DNA of 58,560 nt, the filler included, from Basidiobolus meristosporus CBS 931.73 (Eukaryota > Fungi > Basidiobolomycota), in assembly GCA_002104905.1 (NCBI GenBank). It is 3 parts of 3 records of this genome, joined end to end, with 100 filler letters (N's around TTAATTAATTAA, not from the genome) between each part and the next. Parts side by side here need not be neighbours in the genome. Positions count along the whole stretch, not along the records: positions 25,708 to 45,833 come from MCFE01001011.1; 2 more parts are not named here. One strand, written 5' to 3'. The first letter of the stretch is position 1; the number at the start of each line of letters is the position of its first letter. The notes under the pieces were generated by a model that saw only the letters and a program-made list of their open reading frames with translations, searched no databases and had not been told where the DNA came from. Below, one piece after another: positions 29,492 to 45,190 of this stretch. Both the position numbers and the translations under genes were made by a program.

Positions 29492-29609
29492 GCATCGGCC
29501 ATACATACCAGAAAATACCGGATCCCGTCCGATCTCCGAAGTCAAACTGGTAATGGCCTAGTCAGTACTACGGTGGGGGACCACGTGGGAATACTAGGTG
29601 CTGATGTTT
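29492..29609 (+). rRNA. 5S rRNA gene
   Basis: GCATCGGCCATAC...GATCCCGTCCGATCTCCGAAGTCAA...AGTACTACGGTGGGGGACCACGTGGGAATACTAGGTGCTGATGT. Helix I pairs 5' GCATCGGC with 3' GCTGATGT. T4 terminator follows. Confidence 0.95.
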
Positions 29610-29802
29610 TCTTCCGAATTGCTCCACTACACAATACTCTTTTGCTTCTGTTATGTGTGCGTGTGTCTGTTCTTCCTTTGCTACTGCTGTCTTTGGTATA
29701 AAAGAGTTTGCTTTCCAGATACAATGCTGCTCTCTATTCCCTAGTCATTATTGCTGAAGGGCAATTTTAGATAGTATATATAAGAAAGGGTTGTCGTATA
29801 AT

Positions 29803-29875
29803 GCCTCCTTGGCTCAGTTGGCAGAGCGTCTGCCTAGTAAGCAGAAGGTCGCTGGTTCGATTCCGGCAGAAGGCA
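29803..29875 (+). tRNA. tRNA-Thr(AGT)
   Basis: Cloverleaf; anticodon arm TCTGC-CTAGTAA-GCAGA; GGTTCGATTCC. Confidence 0.95.
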
Positions 29876-30068
29876 TGTTTTACATGTTGAACCTTTTATA
29901 CTTTTATACTTGTACAAGAAAATGTCTTTATTGTCTACTTCAAAGGGCTGTGCTAAGCATCCAAATGTTCAAAACATTAAGTGGCCGTTGCCCATGTCAT
30001 TTACTAAATCTGGCTTTGGCTCTTATGTGACTCTTGAGTAAAAGCAAGCAAAATTACTCCAAAAGCAA

Positions 30069-30151
30069 TGAAGAGAGTGGGATTCGAACCCACGCCTCCG
30101 AAGAGATCACGGCCTTAACGTGACGCCTTAGACCAACTCGGCCATCTCTCC
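30069..30151 (-). tRNA. tRNA-Leu(AAG)
   Basis: Anticodon arm TCACG-TTAAGGC-CGTGA; long variable arm; 83 nt. Confidence 0.95.
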
Positions 30152-30390
30152 ATTCTTGTGGTTTGTTTACCATCGTTCTAAATGTCAATTTAACTTACCC
30201 GCCATTTAGATCAAAATCTATTGCTCGCCGTTGGTGGCTTAGTCAGGTAAGTGCAATTATAGGAGCTCTCCACGTACCTGCTGTCTCATTATAGACTTTT
30301 TTTGTAACGCAGTTGATTAACAAGCTAGTAACGGTGCTATTGTACAATTTATCTCCATATTATATTTTAAATCAGGATCAAATAACAAAA

Positions 30391-30475
30391 CCGAACATAG
30401 CTCAGTTGGTAGAGCGGAAGACTGTAGTGTTATATAGCAATCTTTAGGTCCCTGGTTCAAATCCGGGTGTTCGGA
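30391..30475 (+). tRNA. tRNA-Tyr(GTA) with 12-nt intron (30428-30439)
   Basis: GAAGA-CTGTAG[TGTTATATAGCA]A-TCTTT; 73 nt after splicing at the canonical 37/38 position. Confidence 0.93.
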
Positions 30476-30765
30476 ATTTTTGGTTTGTGCAAACCCTATT
30501 CCTACGGGTATCACTTGTGGGTAGAGCCTTGCAGCAAAGGCTCGCCTTTTTCTTGTTGGATGTGGCTCTTTACATACGATATTTGCAATACTTTATGTTA
30601 TTGCTTTACCACCGTATCTGCAATGGTTTTAAGAAATATTGGCCCTTCCCATAGTGCATTGCCCTAAGTATACAATTTTTGCTTTGTTGCCCCTGAACGA
30701 TTGCTTCCTTTTTGATACTTGTTGGTGGGAATACCGGTTGCCAGGGAAAACAAAATATAAAAATG

Positions 30766-30839
30766 CGCTCCTGGGTGGGCTTGAACCACCAACCTCCTGA
30801 TTAACAGTCAGACGCGCTAGCCAATTGCGCCACAAGAGC
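30766..30839 (-). tRNA. tRNA-Asn(GTT)
   Basis: Anticodon arm TCTGA-CTGTTAA-TCAGG; acceptor GCTCTTG/CAGGAGC. Confidence 0.95.
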
Positions 30840-31150
30840 TTCAACTGACAAACGTTGGTTTCTCAAAATACTTGTATCAGTGTTCATCTTGGTTGATAGA
30901 AGCATTTGCATAAAACTAGCTTAGCAAGGATTCTCTGGATGGTGCACCTGCCTCCCAAAGTCAGCCATATCAGTATGTTCTATGCCGGGTGGATTCCCTA
31001 ACCCGACGGTTTCCATAATTCTTTGAAGCATCACGGAAATCATCTTTTAAGCGTTTGATAACCACTGTAGAATGGCAAACTCCGACCATATAGGAAACCA
31101 ACACTTGACAAAAACGACATATTCCATTAAAACTTTGTACACTCAATAAG

Positions 31151-31223
31151 GCCCGGCTAGCTCAATCGGTAGAGCGTGAGACTCTTAATCTCAAGGTTGT
31201 GGGTTCGACCCCCACGTTGGGTG
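31151..31223 (+). tRNA. tRNA-Lys(CTT)
   Basis: GCCCGGCTAGCTCAATCGG...TGAGA-CTCTTAA-TCTCA. Confidence 0.96.
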
Positions 31224-31365
31224 ATGTATATTTTTTATTCTTTGTTTTTCACTTTCCTGGAATTGAGCAATAATTTTTGTGTTTTGAACGGTTGTCTGTA
31301 TATGATATTTAAGCCGGATAGTGATATGGAAGAATGAAACAATGAATCCCAATAGAGTAATTATT

Positions 31366-31437
31366 GGACGTATAGCTCAGTGGTAGAGCAATTGACTGCA
31401 GATCAATAGGTCGGTGGTTCAAATCCGCCTGCGTCCT
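31366..31437 (+). tRNA. tRNA-Cys(GCA)
   Basis: ATTGA-CTGCAGA-TCAAT; discriminator T. Confidence 0.95.
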
Positions 31438-31557
31438 CATCTTTTTTGCTAATTGAAGCGTTCATTAAAATACAATTTCGCCTAGCCACCAATTACATCT
31501 ACTCACATAAATATAGCATTCAAAAGATTGATGAAATTCATTTAGAATAATCCAAAA

Positions 31558-31630
31558 TGGAGGACCTGGGTATCGATCCCAGTGCCTCTCGCATGCTAAG
31601 CGAGCGCTCTACCATCTGAGCTAGACCCCC
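31558..31630 (-). tRNA. tRNA-Ala(AGC)
   Basis: GGGGGTCTAGCTCAGATGG...CTCGC-TTAGCAT-GCGAG...GGGATCGATACCC. Confidence 0.95.
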
Positions 31631-43120: not shown

Positions 43121-43203
43121 GGTAACATGGCCGAGTTGGTCTAAGGCGCCGCACTCAAGTTGCGGTCTCGTAAGAGGCGTGAGTTCGAATCTCACTGTTA
43201 CCA
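43121..43203 (+). tRNA. tRNA-Leu(CAA), intronless
   Basis: CCGCA-CTCAAGT-TGCGG; long variable arm. Confidence 0.95.
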
Positions 43204-43328
43204 ATCCTTTTTGGTTCACAGCCCCTTCATTGTATTCTTCATTGGCGGGCTACAGAAATAAATATTTAATGCAAGATTATGAGTGAGTAAGTAGTATAAT
43301 ATAGATTAGCTTATAACAGGTAGTTGCT

Positions 43329-43400
43329 GGTTTCGTGGTGTAATGGTTAGCACCCAGGACTTTGAATCCTGTAATCCGAGTTCGATTCTCGGCGAGACCT
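43329..43400 (+). tRNA. tRNA-Gln(TTG)
   Basis: CAGGA-CTTTGAA-TCCTG. Confidence 0.95.
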
Positions 43401-43505
43401 AATTTTCTGCGATTTTTAGAAAACAATAGCTTCAACATACTTTATTAAATAAGATCATGTTAAATGTTTAGTCATATATTTAAAGAGAGAAGGATTGATA
43501 TATCA

Positions 43506-43587
43506 GACAATATGGCCGAGTGGTTAAGGCGTATGACTAGAAATCATATGGGCTCTGCCCGCGCAGGTTCAAATCCTGCTGTTGTCG
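43506..43587 (+). tRNA. tRNA-Ser(AGA), first gene of a tandem pair
   Basis: TATGA-CTAGAAA-TCATA; long variable arm; 82 nt; no T-tract before the next gene. Confidence 0.95.
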
Positions 43588-43592
43588 TATAT

Positions 43593-43666
43593 GCTCGCAT
43601 AGCTCAGTTGGTTAGAGCGTGGTGCTAATAACGCCAAGGTCGCAGGTTCGACCCCTGCTGTGAGCA
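43593..43666 (+). tRNA. tRNA-Ile(AAT), canonical, 5 nt downstream of tRNA-Ser
   Basis: TGGTG-CTAATAA-CGCCA; GGTTCGACCC; T-tract follows. Confidence 0.95.
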
Positions 43667-44110
43667 TTTTTACCTTTTCTGTGTGCAGTATTTAGTTGGA
43701 GTAGGGGGCAGGGTGTTGAATGGAAGTCGGATGGTCACTTGTATGGTACTTTATTCATGAGTAAATCCATTTTAGCGCTTATTTGTCAATCAGTGCTCAA
43801 AGTAGAAATTGTGATTTTTATTGAATTCAATCTAATCAATGTACAATCAAAGGCCAACAACGTTGCAGCAATATACCCATTTTATTGTGTAGTAAATATC
43901 GTGTGTATGTTTTTACTGAGTCAGAAGATATACACTGTGCAGCTGGGGAAATTGACACACATCATAGATGGGTGGGAGAGGGAAAATGTATTTTCATACG
44001 TAGGCTAATTGTTCAAATTGTTTTTGCCAGCCCGATAGCCTCCCTAATATGCTTTACCAAGTATTAAATAGTGTGCGTTATAAATTAAATATTTCACTTG
44101 ATAGATATCT

Positions 44111-44182
44111 TCTCAGATAGTATAGTGGTAAGTATCCCCGCCTGTCACGCGGGAGACCCGGGTTCAATTCCCGGTCTGAGAG
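44111..44182 (+). tRNA. tRNA-Asp(GTC), second sequence variant
   Basis: CCCGC-CTGTCAC-GCGGG; acceptor TCTCAGA/TCTGAGA. Confidence 0.95.
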
Positions 44183-44450
44183 TTTTCTTTTGGCTATTTG
44201 GATGATGGGATTAATTGAAGGTTGGGTTTGATGATACGTGATGGTGTGGGCAATGGCCTTTTTATGAAAGAACATAACAGCTAGTAGACATCACAATGCT
44301 ATCGAGTGAATAATCAAATAAACTATTGTATTGCAGAGGATATGCACTGATTGCAGCCATCATGTCTAGAGCTTATCATGCCATGAAACTTACAAAAGTA
44401 AGTTTGAGTATTAGTATTCCGAGTAACATGGAACATAAAAAATTGTTGTA

Positions 44451-44523
44451 CGAGCATACCAGGGATCGAACCTGGAATCTCCTGATCCGTAGTCAGGCGC
44501 CTTATCCATTTGGCCATACGCCC
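44451..44523 (-). tRNA. tRNA-Arg(ACG)
   Basis: CCTGA-CTACGGA-TCAGG. Confidence 0.95.
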
Positions 44524-44695
44524 ATGTACAGTCATATTGGAGGTCGGATCATTAACAATTGTACATACATCTAAACATGTGCTAGCAACAAGAAAGATCT
44601 ATAGTTTGTCGCTGATCCTCTCTTGTGATCACAAAATAATTTCATCTCGAGTCACTCGTACTACACCAACTTACAAAAAGTTACTGAATGTGAAC

Positions 44696-44767
44696 TTCCG
44701 CATCGGGGAATCGAACCCCGGCCTTCTCGGTGAGAGCGAGAGATCCTGACCACTGGACCAATGCGGA
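44696..44767 (-). tRNA. tRNA-Glu(CTC)
   Basis: Identical body to 33782-33853. Confidence 0.95.
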
Positions 44768-45120
44768 TATTCTTGAACCAGGGAAGATTTATGCGTCCAT
44801 GGATGGACATGTAACTGAACTGTTGTATTTCATTCGGCCAAGTATAGTTGTTATACTTTGGAGGTGTATTTGCGGCAGTCATGCAAAGCTCACCGTAGCT
44901 ACACAATAGAGTCACATGTGATACGCTACTGCCTGTACTCTTTTCTGTCTTGCTCAATTGCCAATGGTACATTACATTACGTGGTAAGGTAATGCCTATA
45001 CTTATTTCGTTATTAGAGTGATCCGGTCATCTGGGATGATCAATCTCAAGGGGAGAAGGGGCTTGGGAATAAATCTATTACGTTACATCTCTGATTATTG
45101 CGTTGCTCCCTTTATCAAGT

Positions 45121-45190
45121 GCATACTTGGTTTAGTGGTATAATTACCGCCTGCCACGCGGTAGACCGGGGTTCGATTCCCGAGTATGCA
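45121..45190 (+). tRNA. tRNA-Gly(GCC), T-stem one C short
   Basis: ACCGC-CTGCCAC-GCGGT. T arm CGGGG-TTCGATT-CCCG has only four 3' stem bases (70 nt in total). Confidence 0.88.

Follow-up and report, generated by a model that had tools for sequence, protein, structure and literature searches.

Several roles have been attributed to dense clusters of tRNA and 5S genes: they would form boundaries of chromatin, be bound by TFIIIC as organisers, act as barriers to replication forks and offer retrotransposons a safe haven. The closest described examples are those of the fission yeasts, where about a third of the tRNA genes are grouped at the centromeres, in clusters of many isotypes that also contain 5S genes (PMC6538654, PMC10085805) and where, in S. 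japonicus, the tRNA clusters sit between retrotransposons (PMC4600332). The premise of a sequence-only reading of the locus studied here, namely a dispersed arrangement of fungal tRNA genes, with few isotypes in any cluster, is thus wrong for this group (PMC6538654, PMC10085805, PMC4600332). Concerning the retrotransposons, the insertions of Tj1 lie 5-11 nt upstream of mature tRNA ends, with 5S genes as further targets (PMC4600332), and Ty3 and Yarrowia elements behave like Tj1 (PMC5911963). Heterogeneous clusters with neighbours less than 1 kb apart and specific for different amino acids are found also in kinetoplastids, Nematostella, Xenopus, zebrafish and Entamoeba (PMC2888827).

The window analyzed is a stretch of DNA of 58,560 nucleotides, and the island of interest lies within a 20-kb piece of it (positions 25,708 to 45,833). 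Since the centromeres of fission yeasts are documented to contain tRNA/5S clusters mixed with Pol III-targeting retrotransposons, the island can be said, by analogy, to join a known kind of locus. Like the clusters of S. pombe, S. octosporus, S. cryophilus as well as S. osmophilus, it is dense and multi-isotype, with genes on both strands at similar spacing, with predominance of A34/G34 isoacceptors, and with 5S, inverted symmetry and LTR elements or their remnants (PMC6538654, PMC10085805, PMC4600332). It is bigger and more complete, with 31 Pol III genes in 11 kb and 13 different genes in a single unit, versus at most 12 genes in a fission-yeast syntenic cluster, and the gene order and the tRNA intron pattern are different. 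With respect to the kinetoplastid, Nematostella, Xenopus, zebrafish and Entamoeba clusters, many of which are tandemly amplified and mostly parallel, the island differs in its random strands and its lack of a tandem unit.

The gene calls obtained with ARAGORN and with Rfam/Infernal were in agreement, and they bore out the claim of one 5S gene plus 30 tRNA genes. The 5S rRNA gene (29491-29609, plus strand) is full-length, with 108.6 bits against a gathering score of 38, and has a T-run at its 3′ end. The tRNA genes span 29802-45192 and score 53-72 bits against a gathering score of 29. All 31 genes score intact, and a permissive Rfam scan of the island gave no additional genes or pseudogenes. 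A first block of seven single-copy tRNA genes on both strands (29802-31630) comprises Thr-AGT (29803-29875, +), Leu-AAG (30069-30151, -), Tyr-GTA (30391-30475, +), Asn-GTT (30766-30839, -), Lys-CTT (31151-31223, +), Cys-GCA (31366-31437, +) and Ala-AGC (31558-31630, -). The left arm of a palindrome follows, with Pro-AGG (32021-32092, +), Val-AAC (32357-32430, -), Trp-CCA (32738-32809, +), Ile-AAT (33050-33123, +), Asp-GTC (33447-33518, +) and Glu-CTC (33782-33853, +), and then the right arm, with Glu-CTC (34496-34567, -), Asp-GTC (34831-34902, -), Ile-AAT (35226-35299, -), Trp-CCA (35540-35611, -), Val-AAC (35919-35992, +) and Pro-AGG (36257-36328, -). Beyond a retrotransposon, a right block of 11 tRNA genes on both strands (42226-45190) contains Trp-CCA (42226-42297, +), Glu-TTC (42497-42568, -), His-GTG (42750-42820, +), Leu-CAA (43121-43203, +), Gln-TTG (43329-43400, +), Ser-AGA (43506-43587, +), Ile-AAT (43593-43666, +), Asp-GTC (44111-44182, +), Arg-ACG (44451-44523, -), Glu-CTC (44696-44767, -) and Gly-GCC (45121-45190, +).

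As had been claimed, these 20 anticodons correspond to 18 amino acids, with all eight A34 families present and Met and Phe missing; an A34 or G34 gene stands for each multi-isoacceptor family. The amino-acid order is T L Y N K C A P V W I D E / E D I W V P ... W E H L Q S I D R E G, so that neighbours differ everywhere except for Glu/Glu at the palindrome centre. Without the gypsy element the island measures 10,973 bp, with a density of about 3 genes per kb and intergenic gaps of 4-442 nt, the exceptions being the palindrome centre (642 nt) and the interval across the 5.4-kb retrotransposon. By spacing and differing neighbours, the island is a heterogeneous eukaryotic tDNA cluster as defined in PMC2888827. 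Also in line with the sequence-only reading, no host protein genes were found on the 20-kb piece: the only ORFs of at least 100 aa outside the gypsy element (42686-43000 and 44661-44972) run antisense across tRNA genes, and a Pfam search of both gave zero matches.

The eight A34 anticodons, the Tyr intron, the non-encoded CCA and the individual terminators are traits of functional-looking, nuclear eukaryotic tRNA genes. The intron, read from the sequence in a gene whose anticodon ARAGORN gave as '???', is 12 nt long and follows position 37 of Tyr-GTA. A T-run of at least four, within 17 nt downstream, was found for 30 of the 31 genes, and 14 of the 29 adjacent pairs are parallel, which means that orientation is random and that a signature of operon or tandem duplication is absent. 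Own terminators and random strands together indicate independent Pol III units, not an operon, each presumably transcribed from an internal promoter to its own terminator. A prokaryotic, phage or giant-virus tRNA array was considered and rejected in view of the random strands, the individual Pol III terminators, the A34 anticodons and the eukaryotic-type intron position.

The only gene without a downstream T-run of four or more is Ser-AGA, separated by a 5-nt spacer from Ile-AAT, which has TTTTT at +1. With a spacer of less than 10 nt and a terminator after the second gene alone, the pair has the form of a dimeric tRNA gene (43506-43666, +), probably co-transcribed as a dimeric precursor. It resembles the S. 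pombe Ser-Met(i) and S. cerevisiae Arg-Asp dimers, with genes 4-9 nt apart and no terminator between them, and also the Ser-iMet and Met-Asn pairs of S. osmophilus. No description of a Ser-AGA plus Ile-AAT dimer was found.

The amino-acid composition was tested post hoc against proxy pools, either S. cerevisiae-like or with all amino acids equally likely. With these proxies, the occurrence of 18 amino acids in 24 independent genes gave P = 0.002 (S. cerevisiae-like) or P = 0.007 (uniform), and the 13 different amino acids of the 13 genes of the left unit gave P = 0.003-0.006, while the right block alone was unremarkable (P = 0.15-0.21). Coverage is more even than in random draws from the proxy pools, and to that extent the idea of a one-of-each set stands, even though post hoc; the selection proposed for it is unsupported. 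The set does not amount to a functioning translation kit: initiator tRNA, elongator Met and Phe are absent from the island and about 42 of the 61 sense codons can be read under standard wobble rules.

If the island were a selected cassette, a near-complete, non-redundant set of major isoacceptors would be kept through some benefit of co-location; the genes might be co-regulated, share a chromatin state or form a Pol III factory. The P values for the whole set and for the left unit, the A34 or G34 gene of every multi-isoacceptor family and the integrity of all the genes would agree with this. Nevertheless, we consider it unlikely, taking into account the missing Met and Phe and the unread codons, the separate units on random strands, the ordinary composition of the right block, the post hoc test with proxy pools, and the lack, within the island, of a second copy of the unit and of conserved intergenic sequence. 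To our knowledge, no mechanism selecting for cluster completeness is known in eukaryotes. Quite unlikely is also a wider scenario in which a few islands would hold much of the genome's tRNA complement, each a near-complete non-redundant set plus 5S kept by selection or through some specific mechanism (a Pol III/TFIIIC chromatin domain, for instance), in a lineage for which it would be new and with a dedicated, co-evolving Ty3-like element. It seems more likely that the even composition is a by-product of cluster survival rather than of selection for a complete translation set. Recombination between repeats, removing nearby near-identical genes, is a candidate cause; counting against such repeat instability, Trp, Ile and Asp genes coexist as direct repeats about 10 kb apart.

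Two copies of a Ty3/gypsy element flank or interrupt the island, and the TE-rich setting previously described was corroborated. Copy 1 (25715-29484, +), recognized by its match to copy 2 and its ORFs, has lost its 5′ part at the edge of the piece and ends in a 3′ LTR (29175-29484, +). Copy 2 (36713-42088, -) is full-length, 5376 bp, and contains, all on the minus strand, identical LTRs of 310 nt each (36713-37022 and 41779-42088), a tRNA-type primer-binding site (41766-41777), a Gag-protease ORF (39409-41382), an RT-RNaseH-integrase ORF (37034-39481) and, in the leader between primer-binding site and gag, a 20-nt tandem repeat of about 9-12 copies (41490-41731). The architecture is that of Ty3/gypsy (Gag, protease, RT, RNase H and integrase, LTRs with TG..CA ends), in the same domain order as Ty3, and among solved structures the best relative is Ty3 Gag-Pol (7q5b, E = 1e-116), matched end to end across the whole Pol. 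The closest named Pol relative (Calcarisporiella) is 55% identical, and no close relative of the Gag was found. Judged from these comparisons, the element is a distinct Ty3/gypsy family; it is apparently young and active. No tRNA genes were seen beside its relatives on 28 metagenome contigs, which barely reach past the element.

The palindrome and the gypsy copies are real features of the sequence as given. The palindrome is perfect, with arms of 2482 nt (31637-34118 and 34231-36712) that are 100% identical, with zero mismatches, and duplicate six tRNA genes. Its 112-nt centre (34119-34230) is ordinary, unique, asymmetric sequence rather than a direct fold-back junction. The right arm ends exactly at the gypsy LTR edge, and the flanks of the arms differ by a clean block of 2152 bp, from 5S to Ala, limited on one side by an LTR end and on the other by a site that precedes a tRNA gene by 6 nt. 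When the left and right blocks were compared, only gene bodies were in common, with no intergenic similarity. So, the 'repeated genomic unit' proposed earlier was not recovered, the internal palindrome being the only duplication.

The two element copies match over 3770 nt except for three one-base differences in homopolymer length (near 25759, 26718 and 27365), which are typical of long-read consensus error; with such errors in the assembly, the palindrome itself or the junctions at the 5.4-kb repeat could have been produced by assembly. The genes would then be real, and the palindrome and the juxtaposed flanks around the repeat would be the work of a long-read assembler, through a chimeric fold-back read or a wrong path across identical retrotransposon copies. 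In favour of this, the contig is just 20 kb long and terminates inside a repeat, the arms are identical throughout, and copy 2 has no target-site duplication (flanks tgtat vs gatga). On the other hand, the centre is neither a direct junction nor adapter-like sequence, the 2152-bp difference between arms can be explained biologically and is not what a fold-back read would be expected to give, and, at about 0.8 differences per kb, zero differences in 2.5 kb have P ~0.14, which is not unlikely. An artefact seems very unlikely on balance, and the missing target-site duplication rather suggests an exchange of flanks by recombination between element copies.

Concerning the insertion sites, the LTR of copy 1 is oriented like the 5S gene and ends 6 nt upstream of it. 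The LTR of copy 2 adjoins the right arm exactly where the mirror site on the left side (31636/31637) is 6 nt upstream of tRNA-Ala. These two junctions are oriented differently with respect to their targets, and a third LTR end (42088) lies 137 nt from tRNA-Trp. The 6-nt distances are comparable to the published Ty3/Tj1 windows, 1-10 bp upstream of the start site or, counted from the mature end, 5-11 nt (PMC4600332, PMC5911963), and look like the signature of Ty3/Tj1-type targeting, one junction being direct and the other deduced via the palindrome. Integration at Pol III start sites is known for Ty3 and Tj1 and is putative for the island element; in addition, Tj1 is self-primed, while the island element has a tRNA-type primer-binding site.

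The resemblance to fission yeasts raises the question of whether the island could be a centromeric or pericentromeric tDNA cluster, i.e., a boundary or repeat of a regional centromere, with the palindrome as inverted centromere repeats. Clusters of tRNA genes plus 5S, inverted tRNA-order symmetry and retrotransposons at tRNA clusters are described for the centromeres of Schizosaccharomyces (PMC6538654, PMC10085805, PMC4600332), the gene spacing is similar (300-600 bp, both strands), and most island tRNA genes, as in S. japonicus (PMC4600332), lack a consistent upstream TATA box. This location appears unlikely, since there is no central core (the arms are 112 nt apart versus a multi-kb core), the conserved DVAIR, RKLEF and NME cluster orders are not matched, and Val-AAC, Lys-CTT and Leu-CAA, intron-containing in S. 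osmophilus, are intronless here. Also counting against it, the 5S sequence looks unlike that of S. pombe, and so does the G37 of tRNA-Tyr and tRNA-Trp. Even when 3 mismatches were allowed, the forward qPCR primers for Tj2, 3, 5, 7, 8, 9 and 10 had no match in the element, and none of the listed Tj elements is 5376 long; the tests for S. japonicus came out negative.

Altogether, the locus is probably a genuine heterogeneous cluster of Pol III units in a eukaryotic nuclear genome, colonized by a Ty3-like element and reshaped by recombination and duplication, its evenness being a likely by-product. The element would recognize the Pol III start region and insert upstream of the mature RNA end, at a distance of about 6 nt, and it is proposed that it accumulates for this reason in and around the island, which would serve as its landing pad. 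Recombination among copies and a recent inverted duplication have probably reshaped the locus. Its interest lies in that one 20-kb stretch combines 31 Pol III genes, all of them intact, with a Ty3-like element that is apparently active and sits 6 nt from Pol III genes, and with two rearrangements, a fresh inverted duplication and a deletion that has an LTR end as its limit. If the source is a fungus outside Schizosaccharomyces, the link between tRNA clusters and targeted retrotransposons would extend to a new lineage, and a new element would be available for studying Pol III-directed integration.

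The Pol III gene island of the part from MCFE01001011.1 consists of a full-length 5S rRNA gene (29491–29609; 108.6 bits with the Rfam covariance models, with which ARAGORN agreed on the island) and 30 tRNA genes between 29802 and 45192, found by both ARAGORN and Rfam and scoring 53–72 bits each, compared to a gathering score of 29. The gene at 30391–30475, left unnamed by ARAGORN, was read from the sequence as Tyr-GTA, interrupted after position 37 by a 12-nt intron. The 30 tRNA genes represent 20 anticodons and 18 amino acids, with all eight A34 families present and Met and Phe missing. 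The intergenic gaps are of 4–442 nt, with a gap of 642 nt at the palindrome centre; when the retrotransposon is subtracted, the island amounts to 10,973 bp, with a GC content of 55% in the genes and 37% between them. When the entire island, longer gaps included, was scanned with Rfam at permissive settings, no extra Pol III genes, tRNA relics or decayed copies appeared, and the two ORFs longer than 100 aa outside the retrotransposon overlap tRNA genes in antisense and have no Pfam match. So, the gene count and anticodon set described in the sequence-only reading were correct as judged by ARAGORN, Rfam and the ORF/Pfam check. The idea of a nearly complete translation kit was not borne out, since both initiator and elongator Met are lacking along with Phe, and about 42 of the 61 sense codons are covered by standard wobble (I34 reading U, C and A; G34, U and C; C34, G; U34, A). 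The tRNA features and the gene layout ruled out a tRNA array of bacterial, phage or giant-virus origin.

Concerning transcription, a run of at least four T within 17 nt of the 3′ end occurs in 30 of the 31 genes, Ser-AGA being the exception, and 14 of the 29 adjacent gene pairs are in parallel orientation, which equals the random expectation. At about −30, a TATA box is not consistently present in the tRNA genes. The individual T-runs and the random orientation argue for separate Pol III units, and neither for an operon nor for the product of tandem duplication; the island genes are thus predicted to be independent Pol III units. Another observation concerns Ser-AGA and Ile-AAT (43506–43666, plus strand), which are separated by a 5-nt spacer with no terminator between them, while Ile-AAT has its own terminator; the pair is arranged like a dimeric tRNA gene and probably is one. 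No published description of this combination in dimeric form was found, and the remaining Ile-AAT copies stand alone. These copies (33050–33123 and 35226–35299, in the palindrome) carry T at position 56 of the T-loop and score 63.2 bits, versus 65.8 bits for the copy at 43593–43666 with C56; a C at this position is near-universal in tRNAs.

The evenness of the composition was evaluated by random draws after removing the six palindromic duplicates, which left 24 independent genes. Two proxy pools were used, one with approximate S. cerevisiae-like copy numbers and another, deliberately favourable, with equal amino-acid weights. At least 20 anticodons in 24 genes were obtained with P = 0.04 from the S. 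cerevisiae-like pool, the only one run for this count, and at least 18 amino acids in 24 genes with P = 0.002 (S. cerevisiae-like) and 0.007 (equal-weight). In the left unit, formed by seven single-copy genes and the six of the left palindrome arm, 13 amino acids in 13 genes gave P = 0.003 and 0.006, respectively, while in the right block (42226–45190) 10 amino acids in 11 genes gave P = 0.15 and 0.21. The island therefore does not match random sampling: its composition is evener than chance in this post hoc comparison, in which proxy pools take the place of the true pool, and the signal comes mainly from the single 13-gene left unit. In S. octosporus and its relatives, the conserved clusters at centromeres are likewise even and non-redundant. 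A possible cause of the evenness would be the loss of near-identical neighbouring genes through repeat recombination.

The left and right blocks have Trp, Ile, Asp and Glu-CTC genes in common, with similar gene bodies and dissimilar spacers; an older duplication joining both blocks was rejected because the similarity is confined to the gene bodies. The two Asp-GTC genes (33447–33518 and 44111–44182) differ by two compensatory base-pair changes, in the acceptor and anticodon stems, so the fold is kept in both. Regarding the proposal of a selected one-of-each cassette, possibly repeated in the genome and embedded among transposable elements, the even composition and the element-rich setting stood, while selection was not shown and no second copy of the tRNA unit is present.

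The retrotransposon is represented by two copies. Copy 2 (36713–42088, minus strand) is a full element of 5376 bp with identical 310-nt LTRs ending in TG...CA, a tRNA-type primer-binding site one base past the 5′ LTR and a purine-rich tract ahead of the 3′ LTR. Its ORF domains are Ty3-capsid/Gag, aspartic protease, RT, RNase H and integrase, and Pol aligns end to end with the Ty3 Gag-Pol of PDB 7q5b (E = 1e-116). Just past the primer-binding site, the leader contains a 20-nt tandem repeat (41490–41731, about 9–12 copies), also readable with a 40-nt super-period (95% matches), whose unit is similar to the sequence directly beside the primer-binding site. Copy 1 (25715–29484, plus strand) is truncated by the piece edge and shows zero substitutions versus copy 2 in 3.77 kb, the sole differences being three one-base homopolymer lengths at about 25759, 26718 and 27365 (40438, 39480 and 38832 in copy 2). 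It is at these positions that the reading frames of each copy are broken; the differences may therefore be long-read consensus errors and not real frameshifts, in which case this could be a young, intact element.

The palindrome arms (31637–34118 and 34231–36712) are perfectly complementary over 2482 nt and are separated by a spacer, 112 nt of ordinary, asymmetric sequence. The palindrome centre contains neither adapter-like sequence nor a direct fold-back junction, and the asymmetric spacer fits better with a natural fold-back duplication than with a chimeric read; however, an assembly artefact may be suspected in an error-prone assembly and a short contig terminating in a repeat.

As to the junctions, the 3′ LTR end of copy 1 lies 6 nt before the start of the 5S gene, in the same orientation, and that of copy 2 (36713) adjoins the right palindrome arm, whose final base (36712) mirrors position 31637, located 6 nt upstream of tRNA-Ala, counted from its 5′ end. 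The distance to a Pol III gene is thus equal in both cases, and it is consistent with the published windows of Tj1 of S. japonicus, which integrates upstream of mature tRNA ends at a distance of 5–11 nt and has 5S genes among its targets (PMC4600332), and of Ty3 and several Yarrowia elements, which integrate a few bases away from the start site (PMC5911963). No target-site duplication occurs between the flanks of copy 2 (36708–36712 and 42089–42093), which indicates that they do not derive from a single insertion event. A 2152-bp 5S-to-Ala block is present in the left arm and absent from the right, one gap end falling exactly at the LTR terminus. We infer that every junction could be explained by three steps: an inverted duplication would have copied the region together with the element beside the 5S gene, another insertion would have occurred upstream of the mirrored Ala gene, and recombination between the two direct copies would have deleted the 2152-bp Ala-to-5S block from the right arm.

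The closest named relative of Pol is from Calcarisporiella thermophila (55% identical), followed by Rotaria, Mucor and Absidia, and no close relative of Gag was found in the database search; the family is thus undescribed in the databases searched. An Atlas lookup yielded no informative taxa, text searches with 5S and LTR strings had no hits, and no part of the contig resembled human sequence. A metagenome search gave 43 loci with relatives of the element. No tRNA genes were detected in the 28 metagenome contigs scanned, most of which consist of the element alone, and no relatives were found in viral contigs. Many of the closest Pol relatives (about 30–54% identity; loci L002, L012, L016, L034, L038, L041 and L042) come from the JGI contig series Ga01162xx, which we take to be from moss-associated samples.

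Heterogeneous tRNA clusters are common across eukaryotes (PMC2888827). About a third of fission-yeast tRNA genes lie in centromeric, multi-isotype clusters on both strands, which also include 5S genes, inverted symmetry and LTR remnants (PMC6538654, PMC10085805), and in S. japonicus tRNA clusters occur between Ty3/gypsy elements, the clustering being attributed to Pol III-directed integration (PMC4600332). By analogy, the island is the same kind of locus as these tRNA/5S clusters. Membership of the fission-yeast set is not demonstrable, however: unlike those centromere clusters, it has no central core and its tRNA order is different, and its tRNA genes have another intron pattern than those of S. 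osmophilus. An S. japonicus element or locus was not supported, as the forward qPCR primers for seven families (Tj2, 3, 5, 7, 8, 9 and 10) did not match the element at up to three mismatches and none of the reported Tj lengths equals its 5376 bp; for Tj11–21, identity with the element is only improbable. The 5S sequence and the G37 of tRNA-Tyr and tRNA-Trp may also be unlike those of S. pombe. The interest of the locus lies in how large and complete the island is, in its so far unexplained evenness, and in a new Ty3-like element whose targeting signature is clean.
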